Source: Macrostomum lignano
Taxonomy: Eukaryota
Reading direction: 5' to 3'
Assembly: GCA_002269645.1 (NCBI GenBank)
Contig: NIVC01002479.1
Span: 184,998 to 208,684 of the forward strand
Length of the DNA: 23,687 nt
Shown here: positions 3,001 through 23,687 of the stretch, one piece after another
Numbering within the stretch: position 1 is the first letter of the stretch
Layout: each line of letters opens with the position of its first letter
Notes under the pieces: generated by a model
Seen by the model: only the letters and a program-made list of their open reading frames with translations
Told to the model about the DNA's origin: nothing
Database searches by the model: none
Made by a program: the position numbers and the translations under genes

Positions 3001-6000
3001 GCGCTAAAATGAGTGCCTGCGGCGCTAAAATGAGTGCCTGCGGCGCTAAAATGAGTGCCTGCGGCGCTAAAATGAGTGCCTGCGGCGCTAAAATAAATGC
3101 CTGCGGCGAAAAAATGAGTGCGGAGCTAAAATGAGTGCCTCCGGCGCTAAAATAAATGCCTGCGGCGCTAAAATGAGTGCCTGCGGCGCTAAAATGACTG
3201 CCTGCGGCGCTAAAATGAGTGTCTGCGGTGCCAAAATAAGTGCCTGCGGCGCTAAAATAAATGCCTGCGGCGCTAAAATGAGTGCCTGCGGCGCTAAAAT
3301 GAATGCCTGCGGCGCTAAAATGAGTGCCTGCGGCGCTAAACTGAGTGCCTGCGGCGCTAAAATGAATGCCTGCGGCGCTAAAATGAGTGCCTGCGGCGCC
3401 AAAATGAGTGTCTGTTGTCTGCGGCGCTAAAATGAGTGCCTGCGGCGCCAAAATGAGTGTCTGTTGTCTGCGGCGCCAAAATGAGTGCCTGCGGCGCTAA
3501 AATGAATGCCTGCGGGGCTAAAATGAGTGCCTGCGGCGCTAAACTGAGAGCCTGCGGCGCTAAAATGAATGCCTGCGGCGCTAAAATGAATGCCTGCGGC
3601 GCCAAAATGAGTGTCTGTTGTCTGCGGCGCCTAAATGAGTGCCTGCGGCGCCAAAATGAGTGTCTGCGGAGCCAAATTGAGTGCCTGCGGCGCCAAAATG
3701 AGTGTCTGCGGAGCCAAAATGAGTGCCTGCAGAGCTAAAATGAGTGCCTGCGGAGCCAAAATGAGTGCTTGCCGCGCCAAAATGCGTTCCTGCGGCGCTA
3801 AAATGAGTGCCTGCGGCGCTAAAATGAGTTCCTGCGGAGCTAAAATGAGTGCCTGCGGCGCTAAAATGAGTGCCTGCGGCGCAAAAATGAGTACGGAGCT
3901 AAAATGAGTGCCTGCGGCGCTAAAATAAATGCCTGCGGCGCTAAAATAAATGCCTGCGGCGCCAAAATGAGTGCCTGCGGCGCCAAAATGAGTGTCTGTT
4001 GTGTGCGGCGCCAAAATGAGTGTCTGCGGAGCCAAAATGAGTGCCTGCAGAGCCAAAATGAGTGCCTGAAGAGCCAAAATGAGTGCCTCCGGCGCTAAAA
4101 TAAATGCCTGCGGCGCTAAAATGAGTGCCTGCGGCGCTAAAATGAGTGCCTGCGGAGCCAAAATGAGTGCCTGCGGCGCTAAAATGAGTGCCTGCGGCGC
4201 TAAAATGAGTGTCTGCGGAGCCAAAATGAGTGCCTGCAGAGCCAAAATGAGTGCCTGCAGAGCCAAAATGAGTGCCTGCAGAGCCAAAATGAGTGCCTGC
4301 AGAGCCAAAATGAGTGCCTGCGGCGCTAAAATAAATGCCTGCGGCGCTAAAATGAGTTCCTGCGGCGCTAAAATGAGTGCCTGCGGAGCCAAAATGAGTG
4401 CCTGCGGTGCCAAAATGAGTGCCTGCGGCGCCAAAATGAGTGTCTGCGGAGCCAAAATGAGTGCCTGCAGAGCTAAAATGAGTGCCTGCGGAGCCAAAAT
4501 GAGTGCTTGCCGCGCCAAAATGCGTGCCTGCGGCGCTAAAATGAGTGCCTGCGGCGCTAAAATGAGTGCCTGCGGCGCTAAAATGAGTGCCTGCGGCGCT
4601 AAAATGAGTGCCTGCGGCGCTAAAATGAGTGCGGAGCTAAAATGAGTGCCTGCAGCGCTAAAATGAGTGCGGAGCTAAAATGAGTGCCTGCGGCGCTAAA
4701 ATGAGTGTCTGCGGTGCCAAAATGAGTGCCTGCGGCGCTAAAATAAATGCCTGCGGCGCTAAAATGAGTGCCTGCGGCGCTAAAATGAGTGCCTGCGGAG
4801 CCAAAATGAGTGCCTGCGGTGCCAAAATGAGTGCCTGCGGTGCTAAAATAAATGCCTGCGGCGCTAAAATGAGTGCCTGCGGCGCTAAAATGAATGCCTG
4901 CGGCGCTAAAATGAGTGCCTGCGGCGCTAAACTGAGTGCCTGCGGCGCTAAAATGAATGCCTGCGGCGCTAAAATGAGTGCCTGCGGCGCCAAAATGAGT
5001 GCCTGCGGCGCCAAAATGAGTGTCTGTTGTCTGCGGCGCCAAAATGAGTGCCTGCGGCGCTAAAATGAATGCCTGCGGCGCTAAAATGAGTGCCTGCGGC
5101 GCTAAACTGAGTGCCTGCGGCGCTAAAATGAATGCCTGCGGCGCTAAAATGAATGCCTGCGGCGCCAAAATGAGTGTCTGTTGTCTGCGGCGCCAAAATG
5201 AGTGCCTGCGGCGCCAAAATGAGTGTCTGCGGAGCGAAATTGAGTGCCTGCGGCGCCAAAATGAGTGTCTGCGGAGCCAAAATGAGTGCCTGCAGAGCTA
5301 AAATGAGTGCCTGCGGAGCCAAAATGAGTGCTTGCCGCGCCAAAATGCGTTCCTGCGGCGCTAAAATGAGTGCCTGCGGCGCTAAAATGAGTGCCTGCGG
5401 AGCTAAAATGAGTGTTTGCGGCGCTAAAATGAGTTCCTGCGGCGCAAAAATGAGTGCGGAGCTAAAATGAGTGCCTGTGGCGCTAAAATAAATGCTGCGG
5501 CGCTAAAATAAATGCCTGCGGCGCCAAAATGAGTGCCTGCGGCGCCAAAATGAGTGTCTGTTGTGTGCGGCGCCAAAATGAGTGTCTGCGGAGCCAAAAT
5601 GAGTGCCTGCAGAGCCAAAATGAGTGCCTGCAGAGCCAAAATGAGTGCCTCCGGCGCTAAAATGAATGCCTGCGGCGCTAAAATGAGTGCCTGCGGCGCT
5701 AAAATAAATGCCTGCGGCGCTAAAATGAGTGCCTGCGGCGCTAAAATGAGTGCCTGCGGAGCCAAAATGAGTGCCTGCGGTGCCAAAATAAGTGCCTGCG
5801 GCGCTAAAATAAATGCCTGCGGCGCCAAAATGAGTGTCTGCGGAGCCAAAATGAGTGCCTGCGGAGCCAAAATAAGTGCCTGCAGAGCCAAAATGAGTGC
5901 CTGCAGAGCCAAAATGAGTGCCTGCGGCGCTAAAATGAGTGTCTGCGGAGCCAAAATGAGTGCCTGCAGAGCCAAAATGAGTGTCTGTCGTCTGCGGCGC

Positions 6001-8351
6001 CAAAATGAGTGTCTGCGGCGCTAAAATGAGTGCCTGCGGCGCCAAAATGAGTGCCTGCGGCGCCAAAATGAGTGTCTGCGGAGCCAAAATGAGTGCCTGC
6101 AGAGCCAAAATGAGTGCCTCCGGCGCTAAAATAAATGCCTGCGGCGCTAAAATGAGTGCCTGCAGAGCCAAAATGAGTGCCTGCAGAGCCAAAATGAGTG
6201 CCTCCGGCGCTAAACTAAATGCCTGCGGCGCTAAAATGAGTGCCTGCGGCGCTAAAATGAGTGCCTGCGGCGCTAAAATGAGTGTCTGCGGTGCCAAAAT
6301 GAGTGCCTGCGGCGCTAAAATAAATGCCTGCGGCGCTAAAATGAGTGTCAGCGGAGCCAAAATGAGTGCCTGCAGAGCCAAAATGAGTGCCTGCAGAGCC
6401 AAAATAAGTGCCTGCAGAGCCAAAATGAGTGTCTGCGGAGCCAAAATGAGTGCCTGCAGAGCCAAAATGAGTGCCTGCAGAGCCAAAATGAGTGCCTGCA
6501 GAGCCAAAATGAGTGCCTCCGGCGCTAAAATAAATGCCTGCGGCGCTAAAATGAGTGCCTGCGGAGCCAAAATGAGTGCCTGCGGAGCCAAAATGAGTGC
6601 CTGCAGAGCCAAAATGAGTGCCTGCGGCGCTAAAATGAATGCCTGCGGCGCTAAAATGAGTCCCTGCGGCGCTAAACTGAGTGCCTGCGGCGCTAAAATG
6701 AATGCCTGCGGAGCCAAAATGAGTGTCTGCGGAGCCAAAATGAGTGTCTGCGGCGCTAAAATGAGTGCCTGCGGCGCTAAAATGAGTGCCTGCGGCGCTA
6801 AAATGAGTGCCTGCGGCGCTAAAATGAGTGCGGAGCTAAAATGAGTGCCTGCAGCGCTAAAATGAGTGCGGAGCTAAAATGAGTGCCTACGGCGCTAAAA
6901 TGAGTGTCTGCGGAGCCAAAATGAGTGTCTGCGGAGCCAAAATGAGTGTCTGCGGCGCCAAAATGAGTGCCTGCGGCGCTAAAATGAGTGCCTGCAGAGC
7001 CAAAATGAGTGCCTGCGGAGCCAAAATGAGTGCCTGCGGAGCCAAAATGAGTGCCTGCGGAGCCAAAATGAGTGCCTGCAGAGCCAAAATGAGTGTCTGC
7101 GGCGCTAAAATGAGTGCCTGCGGAGCCAAAATGAGTGCCTGCGGAGCCAAAATGAGTGCCTGCGGAGCCAAAATGAGTGCCTGCAGAGCCAAAATGAGTG
7201 CTTGCCGCGCCAAAATGCGTGCCTATGGCGCCAAAATGAGTGCCTGCGGCGCTAAAATGAGTGCCTGCAGAGCCAAAATGAGTGTCTGCGGAGCCAAAAT
7301 GAGTGCCTGCGGCGCTAAAATGAGTGCCTGCGGCGCTAAAATGAGTGCCTGCGGCGCCAAAATGAGTGCCTGCGGCGCCAAAATGAGTGTCTGCGGAGCC
7401 AAAATGAGTGCCTGCAGAGCCAAAATGAGTGTCTGTTGTCTGCGGCGCTAAAATGAGTGCCTGCGGCGCCAAAATGAGTGCCTGCAGAGCCAAAATGAGT
7501 GCTTGCCGCGCCAAAATGCGTGCCTATGGCGCCAAAATGAGTGCCTGCGGCGCTAAAATGAGTGCCTGCGGCGCAAAAATGAGTGCGGAGCTAAAATGAG
7601 TGCCTGCGGCGCTAAAATAAATGCCTGCGGCGCTAAAATAAATGCCTGCGGCGCCAAAATGAGTGCCTGCGGCGCCAAAATGAGTGTCTGCGGAGCCAAA
7701 ATGAGTGCCTGCAGAGCCAAAATGAGTGTCTGTTGTCTGCGGCGCCAAAATGAGTGCCTGCAGAGCCAAAATGAGTGCCTCCGGCGCTAAAAAAAATGCC
7801 TGCGGCGCTAAAATGAGTGCCTATGGCGCCATAAAAGAGTGCCTGCGGCGCTAAAATGAGTGCCTGCGGAGCCAAAATGAGTGTCTGCGGAGCCAAAATG
7901 AGTGCCTGCGGCGCTAAAATAAAAGCCTGCGGCGCTAAAATGAGTGCCTGCGGCGCCAAAATGAGTGCCTGCGGCGCCAAAATGAGTGTCTGCGGAGCCA
8001 AAATGAGTGCCTGCAGAGCCAAAATGAGTGTCTGTTGTCTGCGGCGCCAAAATGAGTGCCTGCAGAGCCAAAATGAGTGCCTCCGGCGCTAAAATAAATG
8101 CCTGCGGCGCCAAAATGAGTGCCTGCGGCGCTAAAATGAGTGCCTGCGGCGCTAAAATGAGTGTCTGCGGTGCCAAAATGAGTGCCTGCGGCGCTGAAAT
8201 AAATGCCTGCGGCGCTAAAATGAGTGTCAGCGGAGCCAAAATGAGTGCCTGCAGAGCCAAAATGAGTGCCTGCAGAGCCAAAATGAGTGCCTGCGGAGCC
8301 AAAATGAGTGTCTGCGGCGCCAAAATGAGTGCCTGCGGTGCCAAAATGAGC
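1..8351. repeat. 21-bp tandem satellite/minisatellite, consensus AAAATGAGTGCCTGCGGCGCY, about 395 units, open at the window 5' edge; includes 28-bp and 17-bp variant units
   Basis: The unit is read directly throughout. Variants include AAAATGAAT, AAAATAAAT, AAACTG, GTCTG, CAGAGCC and GGAGCC. The array stops abruptly at ...CCAAAATGAGC (about 8351) and unique sequence follows. Confidence 0.98.
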
Positions 8352-8790
8352 ACTGACAATACCGATTCTGAAAATAATGTACATGTATTTCGCGTATTGG
8401 TACGAGGTTCGGCTAGGGGTACCCCAAACAAATTGCCGTCCCTAATACCCCTAGTGCGTACGCATTTGTGTGCGCTCTCGGGGGGCAGAGGAATGGGCCT
8501 ACTGCTTGCTATGTCGGGCCAGGTCTGATCCAGTAAAGTCCAATGCAAAGTGAAACGGTTTGTTTTGTCATAACTTGCTTCAAAACACCAGAGAGAAAGC
8601 ACTTCAATATACAGCGTGTATTTTATCGTGAAGTCTTGGTCATGTGGCAAAATGCACTGAGCCAGAAACTTCTCGTGACTAACCGAATAGCCGGAAAAAT
8701 CAAGCATTGAAAAATGGTAAGAAACCTGACACATTGGCCGAACAGGATAGCAAAGACAATCAAAGTGATAGCGCATGATCCAGCTGAAAA

Positions 8791-9388
<598 letters not shown>

Positions 9389-9752: not shown

Positions 9753-9791
9753 CTGCGAGTTGGTTGAATGGGTTGGGGCGGCTTTCGTGGG

Positions 9792-10423
9792 GCAGATCTC
9801 ATTGGGGAGGGGCGGATCTCATTGGGGGGGGGCGGATCTCATTGTGGAGGGGGCGGATCTCACTGGGGAGGGGGCGGATCTCATTGTGGAGGGGGGCGGA
9901 TCTCACTGGGGAGGGGGCGGATCTCATTGGGGAGGGGGCGGATCTCATTGTGGAGGGGGGCGGATCTCATTGGGAGGGGGCGGATCTCATTGTGGAGGGG
10001 GCGGATCTCACTGGGGAGGGGGCGGATCTCATTGTGGAGGGGGCGGATCTCACTGGGAGGGGGCGGATCTCATTGGGGAGGGGCGGATCTCATTGTGGAG
10101 GGGGCGGATCTCACTGGGGAGGGGCGGATCTCATTGGGAGGGGGCGGATCTCATTGGGGAGGGGGCGGATCTCATTGGGGAGGGGCGGATCTCATTGGGA
10201 GGGGAGCGGATCCCTCATTATGGAGGGGGCGGATCTCATTGGGGAGGGAGCGGATCTCACTGGGGAGGGAGCGGATCTCATGGGAGGGGGCGGATCTCAT
10301 TGGGGAGGGGAGCGGATCTCATTAGGGAGGGGGCGGGTCTAATTGGGAGGTGGCGGATCTCATTGGGGAGGGGAGCGGATCTCATGGGAGGGGGCGGATC
10401 TCATTGGGGAGGGGAGCGGATCT
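9792..10423. repeat. G-rich 20-22-bp minisatellite (GGGGCGGATCTCATTGGGGAG), about 30 units, filling most of the last THADA intron
   Basis: Read directly. Unit length varies with G-run length. Confidence 0.96.
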
Positions 10424-10464
10424 TGAAGGGCCTTCCAATCTAATCGCCAAGCAAACGGCCTCAC

Positions 10465-10622
10465 CTCGGCAATGCTGGCCTCAACTTGCTCAACTTGGAA
10501 TCCGGCCAGCAGCCAGGCCAGCAGGCGGTCAGCGATCGCATCGGACCAGCCGGGCGGACCGCGGCGAGCGGCCAGACGGTCGATGAGCCAGTCCAGACAC
10601 TTTGACTGGCAGGCCGGCTCAA
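10465..10622 (-). CDS. THADA: THADA-like internal exon, 158 nt ((V)EPACQSKCLDWLIDRLAARRGPPGWSDAIADRLLAWLLAGFQVEQVEASIAE)
   Basis: Acceptor TTTATCCCGCCCAG| and donor GAG|GTGAGG. Phase 1 in, phase 0 out. It lies within track ORF 10360..10722. Confidence 0.85.
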
Positions 10623-10752: not shown

Positions 10753-11165
10753 CACTCTACTTCTCTCCCGCTTAACTCTACTTCTCTCCAGCTTAACTCT
10801 ACTTCTCTCCAGCTTAACTCTACTTCTCTCCAGCTTAACTCTACTTCTCTCCAGCTTAACTCTACTTCTCTCCAGCTTAACTCTACTTCTCTCCCGCTTA
10901 ACTCTACTTCTCTCCAGCTTAACTCTACTTCTCTCCAGCTTAACTCTACTTCTCTCCCGCTTAACTCTACTTCTCTCCAGCTTAACTCTACTTCTCTCCA
11001 GCTTAACTCTACTTATCTCCAGCTTAACTCTACTTCTTTCCCGCTTAACTCTACTTCTCTCCAGCTTAACTCTACTTCTCTCCCGCTTAACTCTACTTCT
11101 CTCCCGCTTAACTCTACTTCTCTCCAGCTTAACTCTACTTCTATCCAGTTTTACTCTACTTCTCC
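10753..11165. repeat. 21-bp pyrimidine-rich minisatellite CTTAACTCTACTTCTCTCC(A/C)G, 18 full units plus partial units
   Basis: Read directly. It gives the LNSTSLQ/LNSTSLP repeats in the ORF track. Confidence 0.97.
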
Positions 11166-11322: not shown

Positions 11323-11427
11323 CCCAGCCAGCCAGGTCGGACACGCAGGTGCAGACCTCAGCGGACACCTCCTCGCAGTCGTCCATGAGGCCGGTGACGG
11401 CGGCTTCCCAAAGGTCCAACCAGTCCA
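11323..11427 (-). CDS. THADA: THADA-like internal exon, 105 nt ((V)DWLDLWEAAVTGLMDDCEEVSAEVCTCVSDLAGW)
   Basis: Acceptor TTTTGATAATTTAAG| and donor TGGG|GTGAGG. Phase 1 in and phase 1 out. It resembles the THADA LW...LLQSEEQAVR HEAT segment. It is not in the ORF track on this strand. Confidence 0.85.
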
Positions 11428-11532: not shown

Positions 11533-12351
11533 CTTCACAAGCTGGAAACTTCACAAGCTGGAAACTTCACAAGCTGGAAACTTCACAAGCTCCAAGCTTC
11601 ACAAGCTCCAAGCTTCACAAGCTCCAAGCTTCACAAGCTCCAAGCTTCACAAGCTCCAAGCTTCACAAGCTCCAAGCTTCACAAGCTAGAAGATTCACAA
11701 GCTAGAAGATTGACAAGCTAGAAGATTCACAAGCTGGAAACTTCACAAGCTAGAAACGTCACAAGCTGCAAACTTCACAAGCTGCAAACTTCACAAGCTG
11801 GAAACTTCACAAGCTAGAAGATTCACAAGCTGGAAACTTCACAAGCTAGAAGATTCACAAGCTAGAAGATTCACAAGCTCCAAGCTTCAAAAGCTAGAAG
11901 ATTCACAAGCTGGAAGATTCACAAGCTAGAAGATTCACAAGCTGGAAGATTCACAAGCTCTAAGCTTCACACGCTAGAAGATTCACAAGCTAGAAGATTC
12001 ACAAGCTGGAAACTTCACAAGCTGGAATATTCACAAGCTAGAAGATTCACAAGCTAGAAGATTCCCAAGCTCACAAGCTCCAAGCTTCACAAGCTAGAAG
12101 ATTCACAAGCTAGAAGATTCACAAGCTAGAAGATTCACAAGCTAGAAGATTCACAAGCTAGAAGATTCACAAGCTAGAAGATTCACAAGCTAGAAGATTC
12201 ACAAGCTAGAAGATTCACAAGCTAGAAGATTCACAAGCTAGAAGATTCACAAGCTAGAAGATTCACAAGCTAGAAGATTCACAAGCTAGAAGATTCACAA
12301 GCTAGAAGATTCACAAGCTAGAAGATTCACAAGCTAGAAAATTCACAAGCT
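11533..12351. repeat. 16-bp minisatellite: constant TTCACAAGCT plus a variable hexamer (GGAAAC, CCAAGC, AGAAGA), about 51 units
   Basis: Read directly. The 3' part is near-homogeneous AGAAGATTCACAAGCT. Confidence 0.97.
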
Positions 12352-12366: not shown

Positions 12367-12859
12367 CGAACTCGGCCTCTCCTTTATCCGAGCTCCACTC
12401 CCACGGCTCGGCAGTCAACAGGCCAATGCTGGCGCGACGGCAGAAGTCGCGCAGCGCATGCGCAGCGGCCAGCCGCAGCCGGTCGGGCTGATCGAAGCCG
12501 GCCAGCCGCAGCAGTAGCCGGCCGCAGCCGTCGCCATCGCCGGCAAGCAGGCGGATCCGCAGTCGAAGACAAGGTCCGGCGGCTGGAGAATCTCCCAACA
12601 GGCTCAGCAGCTCTTCCAGCCGGCAGGGCAGCTGTCGCTCCTCGGCAATCAGCTGGCGGCCGCGCAGCCGGCCGGGCTGGTCGAGCGAGCTGGCGAGAAA
12701 CTCTGCGGCCAGGCCGGCAAGGGCGGAGTTGGCCGGCCGGCCGGGACCGCGCAGCAGACGGAGACAGCAGGCGGCCAGGCCGGGGTTGGACAGCAGGCCG
12801 AACTGCAGGGGACAGCGGGGCGACTCGTGCAGCAGCCAGTGGAGAGTGGAAATCTGGAT
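12367..12859 (-). CDS. THADA: THADA-like internal exon, 493 nt ([36 protein letters not shown]...[22 protein letters not shown]...GEAEF)
   Basis: Acceptor CCCCCCCCCCGCAG|ATC and donor TTCG|GTAAGC. Phase 0 in, phase 1 out. The frame is open for 164 codons with Leu/Ala-rich HEAT-like content, and its 3' part equals track ORF 12353..12598. Confidence 0.88.
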
Positions 12860-12916: not shown

Positions 12917-12961
<45 letters not shown>

Positions 12962-12992
12962 CTAAGACAGACAGACAGACAGACAGACACTA

Positions 12993-13073
<81 letters not shown>

Positions 13074-13082
13074 CAGACACTA

Positions 13083-13119
<37 letters not shown>

Positions 13120-13120
13120 C

Positions 13121-13159
<39 letters not shown>

Positions 13160-13162
13160 CTA

Positions 13163-13211
<49 letters not shown>

Positions 13212-13214
13212 CTA

Positions 13215-13274
<60 letters not shown>

Positions 13275-13342
13275 TGCCAGGCAGACACTAACACAGACAG
13301 TCAGACAGACAGACAGACAGACAGACGAACAGACACACAGGC

Positions 13343-13414
<72 letters not shown>

Positions 13415-13428
13415 TGCCAGGCAGACAC
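12916..13428. repeat. (GACA)n microsatellite with CACTAA interruptions and two CTGCCAGGCAGACAC elements 140 bp apart
   Basis: Read directly. Confidence 0.97.
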
Positions 13429-14063: not shown

Positions 14064-14065
14064 GC

Positions 14066-14110
<45 letters not shown>

Positions 14111-14745
14111 CACAGACACAAATAGACAGGCAGACAAGCGGACACAAATAGACAGACAGACACAGACATAAATAGACAGGCAGACACACAGACACAAATA
14201 GACAGGCAGACACACAGACACAAATAGACAGGCAGACACACAGAGACACAGACACAAATAGACAGGCAGACACACAGAGACACAGACACAAATAGACAGG
14301 CAGACACACAGAGACACAGACACAAATAGACAGGCAGACACACAGACACAAATAGACAGGCAGACACACAGACACAAATAGACAGGCAGACACACAGACA
14401 CAAATAGACAGGCAGAGACAGACACATGGACAGACAAACACACACAGAAACATAAGGCCATCAAAGCAGGCACGCGGACACAAATAGACAGGCAGACACG
14501 CGGACACAAATAGACAGGCAGACACGCGGACACAAATAGACAGGCAGACACGCGGACACAAATAGACAGGCAGACACGCGGACACAAATAGACAGGCAGA
14601 CACGCGGACACAAATAGACAGGCAGACACGCGGACACAAATAGACAGGCAGACACACAGACACAAATAGACAGGCAGACACACAAATATAAATAGACAGG
14701 CAGACACGCGGACACAAATAGACAGGCAGACACGCGGACACAAAC
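14064..14745. repeat. Compound GACA-derived repeat: short pure (GACA)n, then 26-bp (GACACAAATAGACAGGCAGACACACA or ...CACGCG) and 32-bp units
   Basis: Read directly. The homogeneous 26-bp GCG variant runs over about 14470-14745. Confidence 0.95.
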
Positions 14746-14775: not shown

Positions 14776-15418
14776 CTCTGCACAGCGGGGCGCCGGCATC
14801 TCCAGCCAGGTGAGCAGCAGGCCCGCAGCGGCAGAGCTGGCCAAGTCGGGCACGTGGCCAACAGCGGACCGCTGGCCCAGCGCGCGCAGCAGCTCGCAAG
14901 CCAGCTCCGTGCAGGCGGCGAACATGTCCGGTCCGTCAGGCTCGTCCAGAATTGTTGGCCAAGCCGACTCGGCTGACGCCAGAAATGTCGCCGGGTCGTC
15001 GTGCAGCCGCCTGCCAATCAGTCGGGCCAGGCGGCCGTCGGACGCCTGCAGGAGCCGCAGGACGGGCTCGGCAGCCAGCGGCCTGAGCAGGGCCCGGAGC
15101 GCCCTGGCGTAGGCGGCGGCCAAAGTCGGACAGCAACCGGACGGCAGGGCCAGCCAATCCAGGCGGTCGAGGCAAAGGCCGGCCAGGCGGCCGAACACGG
15201 ACTGGCGCTCCTCGCGGCCGGGCAGCGCCGGAGCCAGTTCGGCGGCCGCGGCGGCCAACTGCAGCAGGGCGCCGTGCAGTTGGTTGGCGCCAAATGTTGG
15301 GCGCAGGCCGCAGATGATGATGCGCTCGGCTAATCCGGCCAGCTGGTGTCCGGGCACCACGGCTACCAGGGCGCGAGCCGAGAGGTGCCGGACGCGGATC
15401 ATGGGGCTGGAACCGCAG
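14776..15418 (-). CDS. THADA: THADA-like internal exon, 643 nt (CGSSPMIRVRHLSARALVAVVP...ANQLHGALLQ...LDWLALPSGCCPTLAAAY...LLTWLEMPAPRCAE)
   Basis: Acceptor ACCTTGACAG|C (phase 2) and donor GAG|GTCTGT (phase 0). This is the non-repeat part of track ORF 14461..15402 and carries the strongest THADA motifs. Confidence 0.9.
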
Positions 15419-16843
15419 CTGTCAAGGTCGATGGCAGATTTGGGATCATAGAGGCGTCTTCTCTAGGTTGAATTGCAAAATGCAATTTTTTCCTAAATCC
15501 CTGCCACAGTGCCATCCCAAATCCCATGGAGTATCCTTGCAAATTTAGTCCAGACAGCTCGAGATGTCTAAAGCATAGGCTTACTAGTACTCATTGCAGA
15601 AGCTTCGAACGGGTCTGAGACGGTATAGTCCAACCACAGAGCAAAATAAAGTACAAGTGGTTTTATTGGCTATGTATACTGTTTGCACTACTGTTAGTTC
15701 CAAGTTCCAGATCAACTCAAGCTGTACTTTTACTTTAGAATATGAAATGACTGCTTGCAAAACTTCCTACCAATCACAGTTAGGCTGTTCTGAATTCTTC
15801 TTGTCGAAAGACGATTTTAAGATACAGATGAATTATGCTGTACACGGAACTTCAAGAAGTGACTACATCCTTTGGAGATATGGTTAGCCATGGATTCCCA
15901 ATAATTGCAGCAAACCTTGGACATTTTGCGAGAAGATCCAAGGCCACATTTCCAGGAATTGATGTCTTCGTAGTCCTCAAACATGCTGCTCCTAACTGCT
16001 TAAGAAGTCTGACAAGTCTCCCAAAAATATTTCCCGAAAAGCCTGCGACCATTTCATGGTTAGCGACTAGCTTGTTACTGTGTCCGTTAGCAAAGAATAT
16101 GCAACTTATTTTTCCGACGTTTTAAGACGTTTAACAGATACACTTGATAGCTCTGCCAGGCCGAGATATTTCCAAAGCCAAAGAAGACACAAATGTCTTT
16201 GTACAAGTATGAGAAATTTGCGCAAACAATTTCTGATGCTTGCATTTGGCAAAGTGAGCAGAAACTCACCAATGCAACGAATGCTACTGCAATCTAGTTA
16301 GCAAATCAGCTGGAAAGGAATTCTCCTTTTCTTTTTGCTTTTAATCCGTCACATTTCCAATTGTCGCGCCTTGTCGCACTTGCACTGATCAATTTCTGAC
16401 TAAATCCTCCGACGGAGAGTGAAAGTAAACACTGCATAGTTGTACACCTGTGCCCAGTTGAATACACAGTGGCACACCCTCTTAATCCGCGTCTTATCCA
16501 AGTCTTCGAGGCAAATTTCATCAAAAAAAACCAAAAGAAATTCGAGTTCTGAGCTGCGCCAACATGTTTGAAAACTGCTCCACTTGCTAAGCTTGTTTGC
16601 AGGATTGTTAGAAGCAAAAAGAATCAAGTATTCTCTGCTATTTAACATGATCATCTGGATGGTTCATACGGATAACAGATCGCAAGTCGTTAACACAAGT
16701 CTGTAGCTCATGTCTCTCATATTGTTAGTTCGTTGCTGATGTTGACACGGTGTTGCTCAGTATTGTTTATACAGGTTTTTTATACAGGTCTTTCTGCTGC
16801 TCATGCTTGCCATGCAGGTGTTGCTCTTGCTACAATGGGAAAA

Positions 16844-18130
16844 TTACAGCAACGCAGTGGCCACTGTGAGCCGATCCTCCCGCCGCCGTCCCATCCGCTC
16901 TCGCAGCGGCCAGCTGGTCATCTGCTCGCTCCCGTCCGCTGACCTGACGCAGCGACCAAGCGTTACTACGGCCAAAAATTCCGAACGAAATTGGCGATCC
17001 CTGCACAGCAGCACCGCCCAGTTGATGGACTGATTTACGAGGATCAGAATCTGGCCGATGTCGCTGATGTTGTACACTGAGCGAAGGCCCATAACGCCGC
17101 CTCCACCGATGCTGCTATCGTTGTCGCTTTCGTCGCCAAAGACGGTCCGGCGCATGACGACGAAGCCAACGGCGCACACAGGCAGGCCGCACATCAGAAA
17201 GACAACGGAAAGCGCCACTACAACCAGAGTCGGCGCCAGTTCCTCCGCCGCTGCTAGTCTGGCGCCGCCGTGTCGTCTAGAGCTGCGCCCGAGTCGTCTG
17301 GTGCCTCCGTGCCGCCTGGTGTCCGCATTACCGCCAAAAAAGTTTCCCGAGGAGCGGCGAAGACGGCAAAGCCGCACAAGAAGAAGACTGTTGCACACTG
17401 ACACGGCCAGCATCTGGAGGCTGGGCGGCTGCAGCAGTAACACGGTCGAGAAGATGGTCCACAGACGCACGGAGTCGCCATAGAAAGGCACTGGAAGGCA
17501 GGCGATGCGGCCGCCGCCGCCCTGCACCAGGCGATGCCAGCCCCAGAATGCTGGCACGGGGCCGGCCATGGCGATGGTCGCCACGAAGGCGCCGGTGGCC
17601 GCCTTGGCCGCCGAGCGGAGGCTGAGCGAGCGCGCCTTCAGCGGCCGATAGAGGGCGTTCAGACGGTCCAGCGTCATCAGCAGGAACCAGTTGGCCGACA
17701 GGGCGTGGAAAAAGTTGTGCGCGAACCGGAAGCCGCGGCACATGCCGTCCGACATGTTGGGGATAATTATCCCAACGCGGCCACCGGAGAGCCAGGGCAG
17801 CCCCTTGGCCAGCACCTGCCAGCCCAGGCCCCAGCAGATGAGGTTGCCCCAGTCCGACAGCGCAATGCAGGCCAGGTAAAAATGCAGCCGAGTTCGCTGA
17901 CGAATTCGACGAAAGATCACGTGCACCGTGAGCAGGTTGCCCACCGTTCCCATGGCAACGGCCACTGGGACCACGGCGCCGGCCAGGAAGCCGAGCACGG
18001 TGGCCGTGGCGCAGTCGAGACTGGAGCTGTCCACCAGGCAGTCCACCTGCAAGTCCAGCAGGGTGTCCAGGTAAGAATCGTTCAGGTAGCGCTGCAGCAT
18101 CTCGCTGCGCTGATCAGGCGACCAGGGCAT
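16844..18130 (-). CDS. Intronless class A (rhodopsin-like) 7TM GPCR, 428 aa, of divergent peptide-receptor type (FMRFamide/sex-peptide-receptor-like or flatworm-expanded orphan group)
   Basis: Seven hydrophobic segments with class A landmarks: TM1 GTVGN, TM2 IALSD, ECL1-TM3 Cys (MCR), TM3 LDRLNALYRP, ECL2 Cys, TM5 Pro plus N, TM6 FLMCGLP, TM7 NQSINW, and helix 8 FRSEF. An N-glycosylation sequon NDS lies in the N-terminus. Confidence 0.93.
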   Translation of the reverse strand: MPWSPDQRSEMLQRYLNDSYLDTLLDLQVDCLVDSSSLDCATATVLGFLAGAVVPVAVAMGTVGNLLTVHVIFRRIRQRTRLHFYLACIALSDWGNLICWGLGWQVLAKGLPWLSGGRVGIIIPNMSDGMCRGFRFAHNFFHALSANWFLLMTLDRLNALYRPLKARSLSLRSAAKAATGAFVATIAMAGPVPAFWGWHRLVQGGGGRIACLPVPFYGDSVRLWTIFSTVLLLQPPSLQMLAVSVCNSLLLVRLCRLRRSSGNFFGGNADTRRHGGTRRLGRSSRRHGGARLAAAEELAPTLVVVALSVVFLMCGLPVCAVGFVVMRRTVFGDESDNDSSIGGGGVMGLRSVYNISDIGQILILVNQSINWAVLLCRDRQFRSEFLAVVTLGRCVRSADGSEQMTSWPLRERMGRRREDRLTVATALL

Positions 18131-20775
18131 TGCCGGTGGAGAGGCAGCTGAGCTGCGTTATCTTGCTGCTGGCTGGCTGTTTGATATCGCGCCTATTGCG
18201 ATGGTATTTTGCCGGTCAGTTGTGTCCGATACTTGCGGGGTGTGGTCTGTGGCCTGCTATTAGGCAGCTGATATACATATACAGCCTTATAGCCATACAC
18301 GTGAGCAACGTTGCTGCCCTATTCCCCATTCCCCCTCCCCAAGACTCTTATTCGTCAAGAAAACCTCGGATGCACTTAACGAATGACAGGCCCGTGATAG
18401 AGAGAAAGCGCCTACTCAAGCTCCTAAGTTCGACCAAGTTCGTCAAGTAAGTGCGCACGCTTGTTCAGGCTCGAGGCCCTCTAATAGAATTTCATGTCAA
18501 GTTGGTTTGCTTAGGGCAAACCTGGCTTTCAAGAGAGTCCACTGGAACCACTGGAGTCAAAGGCTCCCTGGAGTCAAGATCGGAGGCTGGGCGGATATTG
18601 TCTTAGAGGAGCCGCAAGTGAATTGTTGAACTAATTCACTTACTAAGACAGGTGGAGCTTCCAAAATTAGCAATCCCAAAATGCACACACTGTCATTCCA
18701 AATGGATGGATTTGTGGACAAGTGACAGGCCAGGTAAAAAAGCAATGGAAATTTAAGTACACGAGGAGACAGAAAATGTTGAGTAAGTTTGAGCTTCTAT
18801 CCAGGCACCGGAGCACTACGACCCTTGACCCAGTTCTTACATTTGAATCTTGAATTGATTTTAAAGACAGGCATGCAGTAGAAATGCAGGGTGGGGGGGG
18901 GGGTTGCAGCCATACCCACAAAGCACTGTGCATGCTCTACACAGCTGTATTGCAGCGGCTGTATCATTAGCTAGCTGTTGTTGCCTTGGTTACCTTACAG
19001 CTGGCCAGACGTCTTCCAATGTCATCTTGTGTACTACTATTTTTACATAATAGCGATTTCCAGTCCAACACACACTACAAGTTCCTTCCGATTCTGAGAG
19101 AGATAGTGTGGCTGAAAGCAGAAAATACACAAAAAATACCTGGCCAAGAGGAGAAAAAGCAGATGAGTACAAAAGAGAATAGACTTGAATTTCCGCGTCA
19201 CAGCTACGCTAAAAAAGCAACTTCTTTGCATCTCCAATGCTCTACGCTGTGGATTCTGCGGGATCATTTATTGAAAAATCTGTCATTCAATATCCTCAGT
19301 TACAGGATGCAGATTTGGCTTTCGCTGACTGAGAGAAATGTGCTACATCAGCTTGTCTGTAATTTTTTTTGAAATTGATTTAATCATCGTTCACAGTTGA
19401 CTCGAAAAGTACAAAATAATGTCAAGATAAGTGCACGATTATTCGTACTTCGAATAAGTCTAGACAATGACTAGTGAATTACCCGTTCTAATTTAACTTC
19501 TGGTTGCTAATCTCTTTCAAAACTTAAACTATGCGATATATCGTATAATGTCAAGTCCATATCGACTAGTGACATTAAACAACCTGCGTTTTAATGAACG
19601 ATTATCGTCGATAATTGATGGCAATATTAACAAACTTCCATGAAAAATACATTCTACACCACCATTGTCGCAATAGCATCGATGTTTCTTGTTTTTATTC
19701 GTTTCTAAACCAGATTTTTAACAATTTTCATCGACTTTTAAGACACGAAAGTCGACCGAAAGTTGTATATGTTGTACCGCTTTTTGTCTGCGTTTCAGCA
19801 ACTTTCAAAAGTTGATAATCGATTTGTAAGACCGCTATCTACAGGAGGCCGCTACTCTCTTGTGTAACTCACGTCGAACAAAATGAAGCGGGGGTGCAGG
19901 TTGCAGATCAACTGGTATTCGCACCAGACGTGACACTACTTAACCGCAAACATTCCCGTACGCATGTCTGACTTGTCAGGCGTAAGTTCATTAACTACGC
20001 AATCGTGTTTTAGTGAATTTTCTCACAGGATCTTTGTATTGAATATTTCCATCTCTACATTTCCCGTGGACAGGCAAATGCCGTATCATCTTTGGAGAAG
20101 CTTAACGGCTTTGATTTCGTTATCAGATGTCCCCGTCCCCGCTTCCTGCACTAGTTTGACGGTGGTGTGGTGTCTGTCCGATGGCTCTTGCGACAGCTTA
20201 TTATGCCAGAACGAGACCAGCCGATCTAAACAACGCCATCTTTAAACCAGCGAAAGTCTATTTATAAATGGTGTCCGCAGCCATCAAACTCGGGCTCATT
20301 CACGTCGGCAGCAGAAAATCAGAGTGCCGAAAGCTGCCAGTCAGTCGCCACATTGACAGACTTTGAGCAAGCAACGTGGAGAATGATTAACGCGATCAAG
20401 GCCATGTAAATTTAGTAGGAATTAAACTTCACGGTAAACAGCACCAGAATGAAAATAGATTTCATGGTGCAACTCTGCCAAATGGCCTATTCCTGGAACT
20501 AAGAAAAAGACTGACTGAAGACGGCTTCACGCTTCGTTGCAATCAGTGCCGACTCTTCAACAAGCTTCCGTTTCGGGCGGATGAAGGCCATTCAAGCGGA
20601 TTTTGATGCCAGCCTCTGTCCAATGTATTGCGCAAAACGTACGCCCGTGTATTGCGCAAAATAAATGCAACATACGAAGGGGTCGCCTTCCCCACCTCGT
20701 CGCTGCTTTGTGCTCGCTGCCAACCTGCTACCTTTGCCTTCCTTTTGCTGCTGGTGGGGTTGCGGGTTAACTCAT

Positions 20776-20947
20776 AATATTCAGTTAATATACAGGCGTT
20801 TACTGAATATTCAGGTGTATATTCAGATATATATTCATTTTAGGAGCTAAATTAGACGTACATTCAGGTGTGTATTCAGATGTACATTCAGATGTATCTT
20901 CATTTGTACGAGCTATATTCAGATGTACATACAGGTGCTATATTCAC
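20776..20947. repeat. Degenerate 12-bp tandem repeat (TATTCAGRTGTA-like) next to a THADA donor site
   Basis: ATTCAG/ATTCA words recur at 12-bp spacing, interrupted twice by ...GAGCTA. Confidence 0.75.
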
Positions 20948-20954
20948 TACTCAC

Positions 20955-21080
20955 GCAATAATGAGCGGCACAAATACGCCGGTGTCCAAGCCGCCGTCGT
21001 GCACCGCTGAGGTCTCCTTCACAGGCGGAGTCAGGCGGGAGAACAGCAGGAGGATTGGAAATAGCTCGGGTGTCAGGGCA
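20955..21080 (-). CDS. THADA: THADA-like internal exon, 126 nt (ALTPELFPILLLFSRLTPPVKETSAVHDGGLDTGVFVPLII)
   Basis: Acceptor CAATTTTTACAG|T and donor GC|GTGAGT. Phase 2 in and phase 2 out. It joins the 15418 exon to give FVPLIIACGSSP. Confidence 0.9.
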
Positions 21081-21195: not shown

Positions 21196-21288
21196 CCGGA
21201 TTCCATAGACCGAATGGCGAATTCTAGTCGGCTCTTCAAATACTCGTACATGCCTCGATAGCGATGGAAAAACACAGAGGTTGACAGA
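21196..21288 (-). CDS. THADA: THADA-like internal exon, 93 nt (LSTSVFFHRYRGMYEYLKSRLEFAIRSMESG)
   Basis: Acceptor CACCTTTTTTAG|T and donor GG|GTAAGT. Phase 2 in and phase 2 out. It resembles THADA MTGREFFSRFPELYPFL...QLE as recalled. Confidence 0.87.
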
Positions 21289-21379: not shown

Positions 21380-23687
21380 CTAGAGCGATTCTTAGAAAGC
21401 TAGAGTAATTCTCAGAAAGCTAGAGCGATTCTTAGAAAGCGAGAGTAATTCTCAGAAAGCTAGAGCGATTCTTAGAAAGCTAGAGTAATTCTCAGAAAGC
21501 TAGAGCGATTCTTAGAAAGCGAGAGTAATTCTCAGAAAGCTAGAGCGATTCTTAGAAAGCTAGAGCGATTCTTAGAAAGCGAGAGTAATTCTCAGAAAGC
21601 TAGAGCGATTCTTAGAAAGCTAGAGTAATTCTCAGAAAGCTAGAGCGATTCTTAGAAAGCTAGAGCGATTCTTAGAAAGCTAGAGCGATTCTTAGAAAGC
21701 TAGAGCGATTCTTAGAAAGCTAGAGCGATTCTTAGAAAGCTAGAGCGATTCTTAGAAAGCTAGAGTAATTCTTACAGCTAGAGCAATTTGTAGAAAGCTA
21801 GAGCGATTCTTAGAAAGCTAGAGTAATTCTTAGAAAGCTAGAGCGATTATTAGAAAGCTAGAGCGATTATTAGAAAGCTAGAGCAATTCTTAGAAAGCTA
21901 GAGTAATTCTTACAGCTAGAGCGACTTTTAGAAAGCTAGAGTAATTCTTACAGCTAGAGCGATTTGTAGAAAGCTAGAGCGATTCTTAGAAAGCTAGAGT
22001 AATTCTTAGAAAGCTAGAGCGATTATTAGAAAGCTAGAGCGATTCTTAGAAAGCTAGAGTAATTCTTACAGCTAGAGCGATTCTTGGAAAGCTAGAGTAA
22101 TTCTTACAGCTAGAGCGATTTGTAGAAAGCTAGAGCGATTCTTAGAAAGCTAGAGTAATTCTTAGAAAGCTAGAGCGATTATTAGAAAGCTAGAGCGATT
22201 ATTAGAAAGCTAGAGCGATTCTTAAAAAGCTAGAGTAATTCTTACAGCTAGAGCGATTTGTAGAAAGCTAGAGCGATTCTTAGAAAGCTAGAGTAATTCT
22301 TAGAAAGCTAGAGCGATTATTAGAAAGCTAGAGCGATTATTAGAAAGCTAGAGCGATTTATTAGAAAGCTAGAGCAATTCTTAGAAAGCTAGAGTAATTC
22401 TTACAGCAAGAGCGATTTTTAGAAAGCTAGAGCGATTATTAGAAAGCTAGAGCGATTATTAGAAAGCTAGAGCAATTCTTAGAAGCTAGAGTAATTCTTA
22501 CAGCAAGAGCGATTATTAGAAAGCTAGAGCAATTCTTAGGAAAGCTAGGGCGATTCTTAGAAAGCTAGAGCGATTATTAGAAAGCTAGAGCGATTCTTAG
22601 AAGGCTAGAGTAATTCTTAGAAAGCTAGAGTAATTCTTAGAAAGCTAGAGTAATTCTTACAGCTAGAGCGATTCTTAGAAAGTTAGAGCGATTCTTAGAA
22701 AGCTAGAGTAATCTTTTTAGAAAGCTAGAGTAATTCTTACAGCTAGAGCGATTCTTAGAAAGCTAGAGTAATTCTTAGAAAGCTAGAGTAATTCTTAGAA
22801 AGCTAGAGCGATTCTTTAGAAAGCTAGAGTTATTCTTAGAAAGCTAGAGCGATTCTTAGAAAGCTAGAGCGATTCTTAGAAAGCTAGAGCGATTCTTAGA
22901 AAGCTAGAGCGATTATTAGAAAGCTAGAGCGATTCTTAGAAGGCTAGAGCGATTCTTAGAAGGCTAGAGTAATTCTTAGAAAAGCTAGAGTAGTAATTCT
23001 TAGAAAGCTAGATTAATTCTTAGAAGGCTAGAGTAATTCTAGAAAGCTAGAGTAATTCTTAGAGGCTAGAGTAATTCTTAGAAAGCTAGAGTAATTCTTA
23101 GAGAGCTAGAGTAATTCTTACAGCTAGAGCAATTCTTAGAAAGCTAAAGCGATTCTTAGAAAGCTAGAGTAATCCTCAGAAAGCTAGAGCGATTATTAGA
23201 AAGCTAGAGCGATTCTTAGAAAGCTAGAGCGATTATTAGAAAGCTAGAGCGATTCATTAGAAAGCTAGAGCGATTCTCTAGAAGCTAGAGTAATTCTCAC
23301 AAAGCTAGACCGATTCTTAGAAAGCTAGAGTAATTCTTAGAAAGCTAGAGCGATTCTTAGAAAGCTAGAGTAATTCTTTAGAAAGCTAGAGCGATTCTTA
23401 GAAAGCTAGAGTAATCCTCAGAAAGCTAGAGCGATTCTTAGAAAGCTAGAGCGATTCTTAGAAAGCTAGAGCGATTCTTAGAAAGCTAGAGTAATTCTTA
23501 CAGCTAGAGCAATTCTTAGAAAGCTAGAGCGATTCTTAGAAAGCTAGAGCGATTCTTAGAAAGCTAGAGCGATTCTCTAGAAAGCTAGAGCGATTATTAG
23601 AAGCTAGGCGATTCTTAGAAAGTTAGAGCGATTCTTAGAAGGCTAGAGTAATTCTCACAGCTAGAGCGATTATTAGAAAGTTAGAGC
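21380..23687. repeat. 20-bp tandem satellite TAGAG(CG/TA)ATTCT(T/C)AGAAAGC, about 115 units, with an 18-bp variant (TAGAGTAATTCTTACAGC); open at the window 3' edge and presumably intronic to THADA
   Basis: Read directly. The 20-bp phase is perfect over about 21381-21770, and indels appear distally. Confidence 0.98.

Follow-up and report, generated by a model that had tools for sequence, protein, structure and literature searches.

A predicted intronless PROF1-family receptor gene nested in the same orientation within an intron of THADA in the flatworm Macrostomum lignano

The stretch of DNA analysed here, referred to as the window, comprises 23,687 nucleotides (nt) of Macrostomum lignano (GenBank assembly GCA_002269645.1, contig NIVC01002479.1, positions 184,998 to 208,684), and its minus strand carries one gene inside another. 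The outer gene is THADA, whose 3' part is interrupted by an intron of 5,536 nt (15419..20954, in window coordinates); the inner one, on the same strand and wholly within that intron, is a complete and uninterrupted coding sequence for a G protein-coupled receptor (GPCR), which is assigned below to the rhodopsin-like orphan receptors of the PROF1 family. The locus is a real but ordinary nested pair and represents no new kind of system.

The receptor coding sequence (16844..18130, minus strand) has 1,287 nt, that is, 428 codons followed by a TAA stop, and an in-frame TAA lies 30 nt 5' of its ATG. The product matches the Pfam family 7tm_1 (PF00001) over residues 64-324 with 48.6 bits (E=9.6e-13), the gathering cut-off being 30.5 bits. 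The GC content at the three codon positions is 0.64, 0.50 and 0.79, and the third-position value of 0.785 compares with 0.782 in the THADA exons and with 0.41-0.44 overall in the surrounding intron. An AlphaFold model built on an alignment of nine sequences (the receptor and eight relatives) reaches a predicted template-modelling score (pTM) of 0.79 and displays seven long helices, which correspond to the predicted transmembrane segments TM1 (37-75), TM2 (81-114), TM3 (128-161), TM4 (171-195), TM5 (215-265), TM6 (282-330) and TM7 (344-377), together with helix 8 (379-389) and a beta-hairpin (196-213) in the second extracellular loop (ECL2). The best neighbours of this model in a Foldseek comparison are the mu-opioid, ghrelin, NTSR1 and CCK1R receptors (E about 5e-10), the apelin receptor also being found, with target TM-scores of 0.76-0.81; the best structural neighbours are peptide receptors.

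Several of the positions that are canonical in rhodopsin-like receptors are kept, namely N65 (N1.50), D93 (D2.50), the cysteines C131 and C211 of the disulfide between position 3.25 and ECL2, and D155-R156. The microswitches are degenerate: DRY is replaced by DRL, CWxP by FLMCGLP and NPxxY by NWAVL. All 17 invariant columns of the nine-sequence alignment, in which the receptor itself is included, carry the shared residue in the receptor (C31, C40, P55, G61, N65, R81, D93, K109-G110, C131, R135, D155-R156, P163, C211, D357 and F381). The third intracellular loop (ICL3) contains an insert of 20 residues, rich in arginine and glycine, that is modelled with low confidence. Judged from its sequence, the guest open reading frame (ORF) is an intact rhodopsin-type GPCR with native codon composition. 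The preliminary description had already reported a complete intronless receptor gene of 1287 nt (18130-16844) in the orientation of the host, and the ORF, the 7tm_1 match and the seven-helix model bear this out.

PROF1 was described as a platyhelminth-specific family of rhodopsin-like orphan receptors, 'exclusively derived from intronless genes' in Schistosoma and Schmidtea, in which degenerate microswitch motifs are the norm (PMC3261222). The alignments obtained with BLASTP between the window receptor and two curated members, Schmidtea SMDC1889.2 (110 bits, E=2e-31) and S. mansoni SMP091950 (88.6 bits, E=1e-23), extend from the N-terminal cysteine pair to helix 8. The S. mansoni UniProt entry G4VFU5 is letter-for-letter the sequence that Zamanian et al. 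2011 (PMC3261222) label SMP091950 and PROF1 in their supplement, where 66 curated PROF1 sequences are given. Among solved structures from outside the flatworms the best match is NTSR1, at only 34.6 bits. In an exhaustive search of representative proteins with the 428-amino-acid (aa) ORF, every relative that bears an organism name is a flatworm protein: those of Echinococcus, Schistosoma mansoni and Clonorchis are annotated as 'rhodopsin(-like) orphan GPCR', and those of Spirometra, Sparganum, Anoplocephala, Opisthorchis, Protopolystoma and Macrostomum are hypothetical or unnamed. Further matches include M. lignano proteins from GCA_002269645.1. A word-indexed protein search returned no matches for the full receptor, its N-terminal 203 aa or the spliced THADA peptide.

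The receptor shares with PROF1 a D-L-x-x-x-C...C pair at the N-terminus, the AKGLP(W/Y) loop after TM2, YNISDIG before TM7, N-W-x-x-(Y/L) within TM7 and F-R in helix 8, as well as the peptide-receptor-like fold and composition and the single exon; as regards the latter, one uninterrupted ORF aligns to the relatives from the N-terminus to helix 8. When compared with the motifs in Table 3 of Zamanian et al. 2011, IALSD in TM2 fits [L/I]A..[D/E] and DRL in TM3 fits the DR[L/V] of group II, whereas F...G.P in TM6 is near the [F/Y]...[S/A].[P/L] of group I and N-W-..-L in TM7 has no exact fit, the nearest being N[F/I]..[M/L] of group III, so that there is no exact subgroup match. The window receptor differs from the known members in other respects as well, since it comes from Macrostomorpha, an early-branching free-living lineage outside the original description, is 23-34% identical to the other members, and has the ICL3 insert along with its own TM6 (F...G.P) and TM7 (NWAVL) motifs. 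Taken together, the receptor is identified as a member of the PROF1 family, closer to curated PROF1 than to other GPCR groups, and it is probably peptide-responsive.

It also differs from the relatives checked in its location within another gene. In Echinococcus the relative, a single exon of 1,476 nt, lies outside THADA and has as neighbours an unannotated gene and a gene for a MYST acetyltransferase; nesting is likewise absent for the M. lignano paralogues Mlig021946 and Mlig016690. The three PROF1 relatives with readable neighbourhoods are thus neither nested nor near THADA, and there is no sign in them of a conserved or functional pairing. The annotation of the paralogues calls for two remarks. 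In Mlig021946g1 (NIVC01002184.1; 10001-11447 of the stretch read) an annotated 'intron' of about 490 nt deletes the TM4-TM5 region, and as the family is intronless, there may be an error in the model or damage to the copy itself. The M. lignano protein A0A1I8HJ75 (2,481 aa), considered as a second THADA-GPCR fusion, was rejected, given that there is no THADA in it; it is an over-merged model in which two PROF1-like receptors, nearly identical to each other and 33% identical to the window receptor, stand in tandem and are combined with a zinc-finger segment that resembles a retroelement and with cadherin repeats at the C-terminus.

Turning to the host, the exon upstream of the intron (exon A) ends at 20955 with ...GTA TTT GTG CCG CTC ATT ATT GC followed by gtgagt, and the downstream one (exon B) begins at 15418 with C TGC GGT TCC AGC, the intron ending in ...ccttgacag at 15419. 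The intron is therefore of the GT-AG type, with a length of 20954-15419+1 = 5,536 nt, and its donor GTGAGT and acceptor CAG fit the M. lignano consensus (donor GT[G/A]AG, acceptor CAG; PMC8629364). The peptide across the join reads ...FVPLII-A-CGSSPMIRVRHLSARALV, in phase. On the spliced peptide, ...GVFVPLIIACGSSPMIRVRHLSARALVAVVPG..., the Pfam domain TPR_Trm732_C gives one uninterrupted match to profile positions 34-157 (87.2 bits, E=1.4e-24; cut-off 27 bits); when the pieces on the two sides of the junction are scanned singly, they cover positions 34-102 (exon A side) and 105-157 (exon B side) and are therefore consecutive parts of one domain. Residues 1312-1487 of human THADA (PDB 8y2o_A, annotated 'tRNA (32-2'-O)-methyltransferase regulator THADA') are collinear with the M. 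lignano peptide through the junction, FVPFIMRCGHSPVYHSREMAARALV, with E=8e-9, and the conserved block FVP(L/F)I..CG.SP......ARAL, shared with THADA and yeast Trm732 (PDB 8y2o) as is the TPR_Trm732_C match, spans it. Compared with the human protein, the window THADA is very divergent (36-38 bits); unlike THADA and Trm732 as a whole, only the C-terminal part of about 550 codons lies in the window, and several of its introns are filled with minisatellites. The host gene is accordingly identified by homology as THADA, the Trm732-type cofactor of the methyltransferase that acts on the 2'-O of tRNA position 32, and its exons 21080-20955 and 15418-14854 are read as joining in phase. This agrees with the preliminary description, which had proposed the same host and the same in-phase junction over a 5,536-nt GT-AG intron.

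A public protein model for this locus exists. The UniProt entry A0A1I8IXQ9 (M. lignano, 882 aa), recovered in the exhaustive profile search, is 100% identical to the receptor over residues 1-428 and then passes from the last receptor codon through 'EDASMIPKSAIDLDS' into THADA exon B and three further exons. To do so it uses a donor-like GTAATT (CT/GTAATT; 16847..16852, minus strand) that overlaps the receptor stop codon. Two differences from the window are observed: the CCCAAAT run (15441-15446), 25 nt upstream of exon B, would be one base longer in the sequence behind the model, and in exon D (11427-11323) it has alanine where the window has threonine (EVCACVS against EVCTCVS). These differences may reflect either haplotype or homeologue variation or an assembly error. 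Given this nucleotide and this residue, A0A1I8IXQ9 is an independent version of the sequence, and as such it confirms the layout of the locus, with the receptor upstream of the THADA 3' exons and with order and orientation unchanged.

Six exons on the minus strand make up the partial THADA model, and all its junctions are GT-AG, except that the donor of exon B is uncertain. Exon X (21196..21288; ...LSTSVFFHRYRGMYEYLKSRLEFAIRSMESG), with acceptor ttttttag and donor GG/gtaagt, lies within the TPR_Trm732_C match and within the human alignment that starts at 1312. It is followed by exon A (20955..21080; ALTPELFPILLLFSRLTPPVKETSAVHDGGLDTGVFVPLII(A)), which ends in phase 2 (GC) at the donor gtgagt, and, beyond the receptor, by exon B (14854..15418; CGSSPMIRVRHLSARALV...AVGH), whose 3' end is uncertain: the UniProt model uses a gtgccc donor at 14853, an alternative is gtctgt after 14776, and both are poor. 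The frame of exon B continues beyond the modelled donor (14776-14853) with ...VPDLASSAAAGLLLTWLEMPAPRCAE, which resembles the start of the next exon (12815-12859), and this segment is either a small duplicated pseudo-exon or the product of an alternative donor. Exon C (12367..12859; ...GEAEF) has acceptor cccgcag and donor G/gtaagc, and exon D (11323..11427; VDWLDLWEAAVTGLMDDCEEVSAEVCTCVSDLAGW) has donor gtgagg. The ORF of exon E (10360..10622; VEPACQSKCLDWLIDRL...) stops at 10360 inside a 21-bp minisatellite; the exon is modelled from 10622 to at least 10468, where A0A1I8IXQ9 ends (...EASIA), and its true 3' end is uncertain. This last ORF runs about 21 codons into the 21-base-pair (bp) GGGGCGGATCTCATTGGGGAG array (10360-10423) before its stop, which leaves the C-terminus uncertain. 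Exons C to E rest on A0A1I8IXQ9 and on inspection of the splice sites; no alignment of them with human THADA was obtained with phmmer.

With regard to expression, we infer that the receptor is an autonomous nested gene that has a promoter and a poly(A) site of its own and is removed from the THADA pre-mRNA together with the intron, a reading that the sequence makes fairly probable. Transcription of the receptor would start at a promoter within the 2.8 kb of unique intron upstream of the ATG and would end at a poly(A) site within the 1.4 kb downstream; during transcription of THADA the polymerase would read through the receptor, ordinary cis-splicing from 20955 to 15418 would remove the whole intron, and the two products would be functionally unlinked. 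A candidate core promoter is the TATA-like TATAAG (18286..18291, minus strand), some 155-160 nt upstream of the ATG. As candidate poly(A) signals there are two TATAAA variants (16766..16784, minus strand) at +62 and +75 nt from the stop, an ATTAAA (16345-16340, minus strand) at +501 and an AATAAA (15667-15662, minus strand) at +1,179. Autonomy is favoured by the two flanks, which are non-repetitive, by the lack of introns in PROF1 genes of other flatworms, and by the free-standing position of the PROF1 relatives checked (n=3). For the genes tested in M. lignano, reporters with at most 2 kb of upstream sequence were expressed tissue-specifically (PMC5730564).

Several observations weigh against this interpretation. 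The exact 428-aa product has no gene on record in the assembly collection, which includes the RNA-seq-annotated Mlig_3_7, which may mean that expression of the receptor is weak or that it is unannotated there. The promoter and poly(A) candidates are consensus-like hexamers only. Moreover, a poly(A) site located in an intron on the host's own strand should truncate part of the host transcripts, so that complete independence is an assumption. Finally, 30-39% of M. lignano genes are trans-spliced to a spliced leader (SL) (PMC8629364, PMC5730564), which leaves room for expression driven by the host.

In that case, the receptor mRNA would be cut from the THADA pre-mRNA by SL trans-splicing 5' of the ATG and by internal polyadenylation, as an operon-like unit within the intron and in competition with its cis-splicing. 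This is considered unlikely, even though both genes share a strand, M. lignano resolves polycistronic 'transcriptional units' by SL trans-splicing (PMC8629364, PMC5730564) and AG dinucleotides are present 17-46 nt upstream of the ATG. The preliminary description had raised this route for the case that the DNA came from a flatworm, as indeed it does, and had named GCAG and CTCAG (18148..18155, minus strand) as acceptors. Both are present, with exon starts at 18152 and 18147, but the sequence upstream of them is purine-rich (35% pyrimidine), neither fits the YTNCAG motif, and in both cases the ATG of the leader would be out of frame and would open an upstream ORF of 13 or 22 codons across the receptor start. 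The M. lignano leader is 35 nt long and ends in ATG, and the species has operons (PMC8629364, PMC5730564); every acceptor up to 40 nt from the receptor ATG would put the leader ATG out of frame, with an ORF of 13-29 codons overlapping the receptor start. The CAGs near the ATG lie in a context of 35-45% pyrimidine, and YTNCAG is absent within 400 nt of the ATG, the nearest being 412 nt upstream, an absence that is not decisive because only 9,551 of the 21,754 known SL acceptor regions carry the motif (PMC8629364). The 2.8 kb of unique sequence up to exon A exceeds the repeat-adjusted operon threshold of 1 kb (PMC8629364), and the PROF1 relatives elsewhere stand alone. That the receptor is made from the THADA pre-mRNA, be it by intronic SL trans-splicing (an 'intronic operon') or as a chimeric isoform, is judged quite improbable. 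The chimeric form, in which the GTAATT donor on the receptor stop is spliced to exon B to give a receptor with a THADA tail, or in which the ORF is a cassette exon of THADA, is in itself very improbable. It is the structure of A0A1I8IXQ9; a join from 16848 to 15418, the canonical acceptor lying at 15419, would be in frame and stop-free in the window, a cassette from 18152 to 16848 would have 1,305 nt, a multiple of three in frame with THADA on both sides, and a cytoplasmic THADA tail on the receptor C-terminus is topologically possible. Nevertheless, the acceptor that the model itself uses (exon start 15462) does not keep the frame in the window, owing to the difference of 1 nt, so the published join looks like an artefact of the predictor. 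GTAATT lacks the +5 G of the GT[G/A]AG consensus, the upstream acceptor is poor, the phase agreement has a chance of about one in nine, seven transmembrane helices in the middle of the cytosolic cofactor would place some 1,400 N-terminal residues of THADA outside the cell, and M. lignano models from the same source are often over-merged, A0A1I8HJ75 being an example. The in-frame cassette formed by GTAATT and the GCAG acceptor at 18153 is probably due to chance and a trap for gene predictors, and the fusion in A0A1I8IXQ9 is probably wrong.

Another way of looking at the locus is to consider the receptor a silent passenger, that is, an intact but unexpressed, or a decaying, copy that is spliced out with the intron. 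The missing gene record, transcript-based Mlig_3_7 included, points in this direction, as do the degenerate motifs (DRL, NWAVL and no CWxP) and the low-confidence Arg/Gly-rich insert in ICL3. This explanation appears doubtful, however: the reading frame is open over 428 codons, its coding-type GC gradient is the same as in the host exons, all the family-invariant residues are kept in a fold that is predicted with confidence, and the receptor protein is 100% identical in the second sequence version, which differs elsewhere. The degenerate motifs, moreover, are those expected of PROF1 (PMC3261222), and all 13 planarian PROF1 genes tested by reverse transcription polymerase chain reaction were expressed (PMC3261222). 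As for the assembly, a misjoining of THADA halves, or of the receptor, from different loci might be suspected in M. lignano, a repeat-rich hidden polyploid with redundant assemblies (PMC8629364, PMC5730564), and in a window packed with tandem arrays. Such an artefact is extremely unlikely, since the sequence is gap-free and the host intron nearly free of repeats, exon order, strand and phase are consistent, the Pfam profile is continuous over the join, and a second, non-identical sequence shows the same receptor followed by the same THADA exons.

The preliminary description took the lack of introns as a hint of retroposition, an interpretation that is not supported, because PROF1 genes are exclusively intronless, neither a poly(A) tract nor a target-site duplication accompanies the receptor, and its paralogues are distant. 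No poly(A) tract was found 3' of the ORF and no convincing target-site duplication around it. The two copies of the sole flanking direct repeat (17 nt) differ at two positions; a pair of this quality would arise about once by chance in 5.5 kb, and the repeat is situated upstream of the single AATAAA, which is the wrong side for a target-site duplication. The nearest paralogues are 33-38% identical, none above 38% having been found, and the receptor is therefore no recent copy; the absence of introns was inherited from PROF1 and consequently says nothing about retroposition at this site. A processed retrogene is thus not supported. Most likely, the arrangement would have arisen by insertion or duplication at the DNA level of an already intronless member with its flanks, and not by recent retroposition.

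Nested genes are a known feature of animal genomes, and like other metazoan genes nested in introns, the receptor is complete, has a single exon and lies wholly in one intron of an unrelated host. For human nested genes, the figures that PMC3192792 cites from Yu et al. 2005 are about 63% on the opposite strand, about 37% on the same strand and about 41% with a single exon. Going by these figures, the statement in the preliminary description that nested genes are more often antisense is true for human, and the pair in the window belongs to the same-strand minority, which at about 37% is not an unusual class. A further difference from the human case is that SL trans-splicing would in principle allow M. 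lignano to obtain the mRNA of an intronic gene from its host's pre-mRNA. The pair also invites comparison with the cholinergic locus and with operons. In the former, the gene for VAChT lies in the first intron of ChAT in the same orientation, and the two share a promoter and a 5' exon and serve one pathway. The likeness consists in an intronless gene for a multi-pass membrane protein in sense orientation in a host intron; at THADA and the receptor, by contrast, no shared exon or functional link is evident. As in the operons of M. lignano (PMC5730564, PMC8629364), two genes on one strand necessarily fall within one primary transcript; in contrast to them, the receptor lies inside an intron and not beyond the 3' end of the upstream gene, the upstream exon is 2.8 kb of unique sequence away, against a typical gap of 100 bp or so (threshold 1 kb), and the acceptor motif is absent.

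The rest of the window, which contains no N, is dominated by repeats. Outside the receptor, the host intron (minus strand) has a GC content of 41-44% and a tandem repeat at 20854-20946 only, leaving non-repetitive flanks of 2.8 kb 5' and 1.4 kb 3' of the coding sequence; the other introns of the THADA segment, of 115-1,994 nt, are largely tandem arrays and are short once these are subtracted. Eight further ORFs in the intron (84-128 aa) gave no significant match to Pfam, a single marginal one (E=0.088) being well below threshold, and neither Rfam families nor tRNAs were found in the window. One third of the window (1-8350) is a 21-bp minisatellite with the consensus CTGCGGCGCTAAAATGAGTGC, in about 392 copies with 86% identity, which generates many long spurious ORFs on both strands. 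A 20-bp minisatellite, CTAGAGCGATTCTTAGAAAG, in about 116 copies (21380-23687), fills the THADA intron upstream of exon X and runs past the window edge, and the exon for positions 1-33 of the TPR_Trm732_C profile must lie beyond it. The arrays in the THADA introns downstream of the receptor (8790-9388, 9789-10423, 10754-11164, 11534-12351, 12917-13427 and 14065-14744) differ from one another, comprising (ACAG)n, two 21-mers, a 16-mer, (AGAC)n and a 26-mer, and make up most of the intron length. Simple and tandem repeats account for 15% of the M. lignano genome (PMC5730564), with which the window, mostly tandem repeat outside the genes, agrees.

As far as annotation is concerned, A0A1I8IXQ9 should probably be divided into two proteins, a PROF1 receptor of 428 aa and the product of the 3' portion of THADA, and the locus illustrates how same-strand nesting, together with a chance agreement of phase, misleads gene predictors in M. 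lignano. The nesting as such would be of biological interest only if RNA data revealed expression dependent on the host, through trans-splicing or chimeric splicing, in which case the output of the receptor would be tied to a housekeeping tRNA-modification gene. For the PROF1 family, which is a flatworm-restricted class of anthelmintic targets, the receptor adds a new member from Macrostomorpha, and the presence of this member in Macrostomum supports the view that PROF1 already existed, and was already intronless, before free-living and parasitic flatworms diverged.

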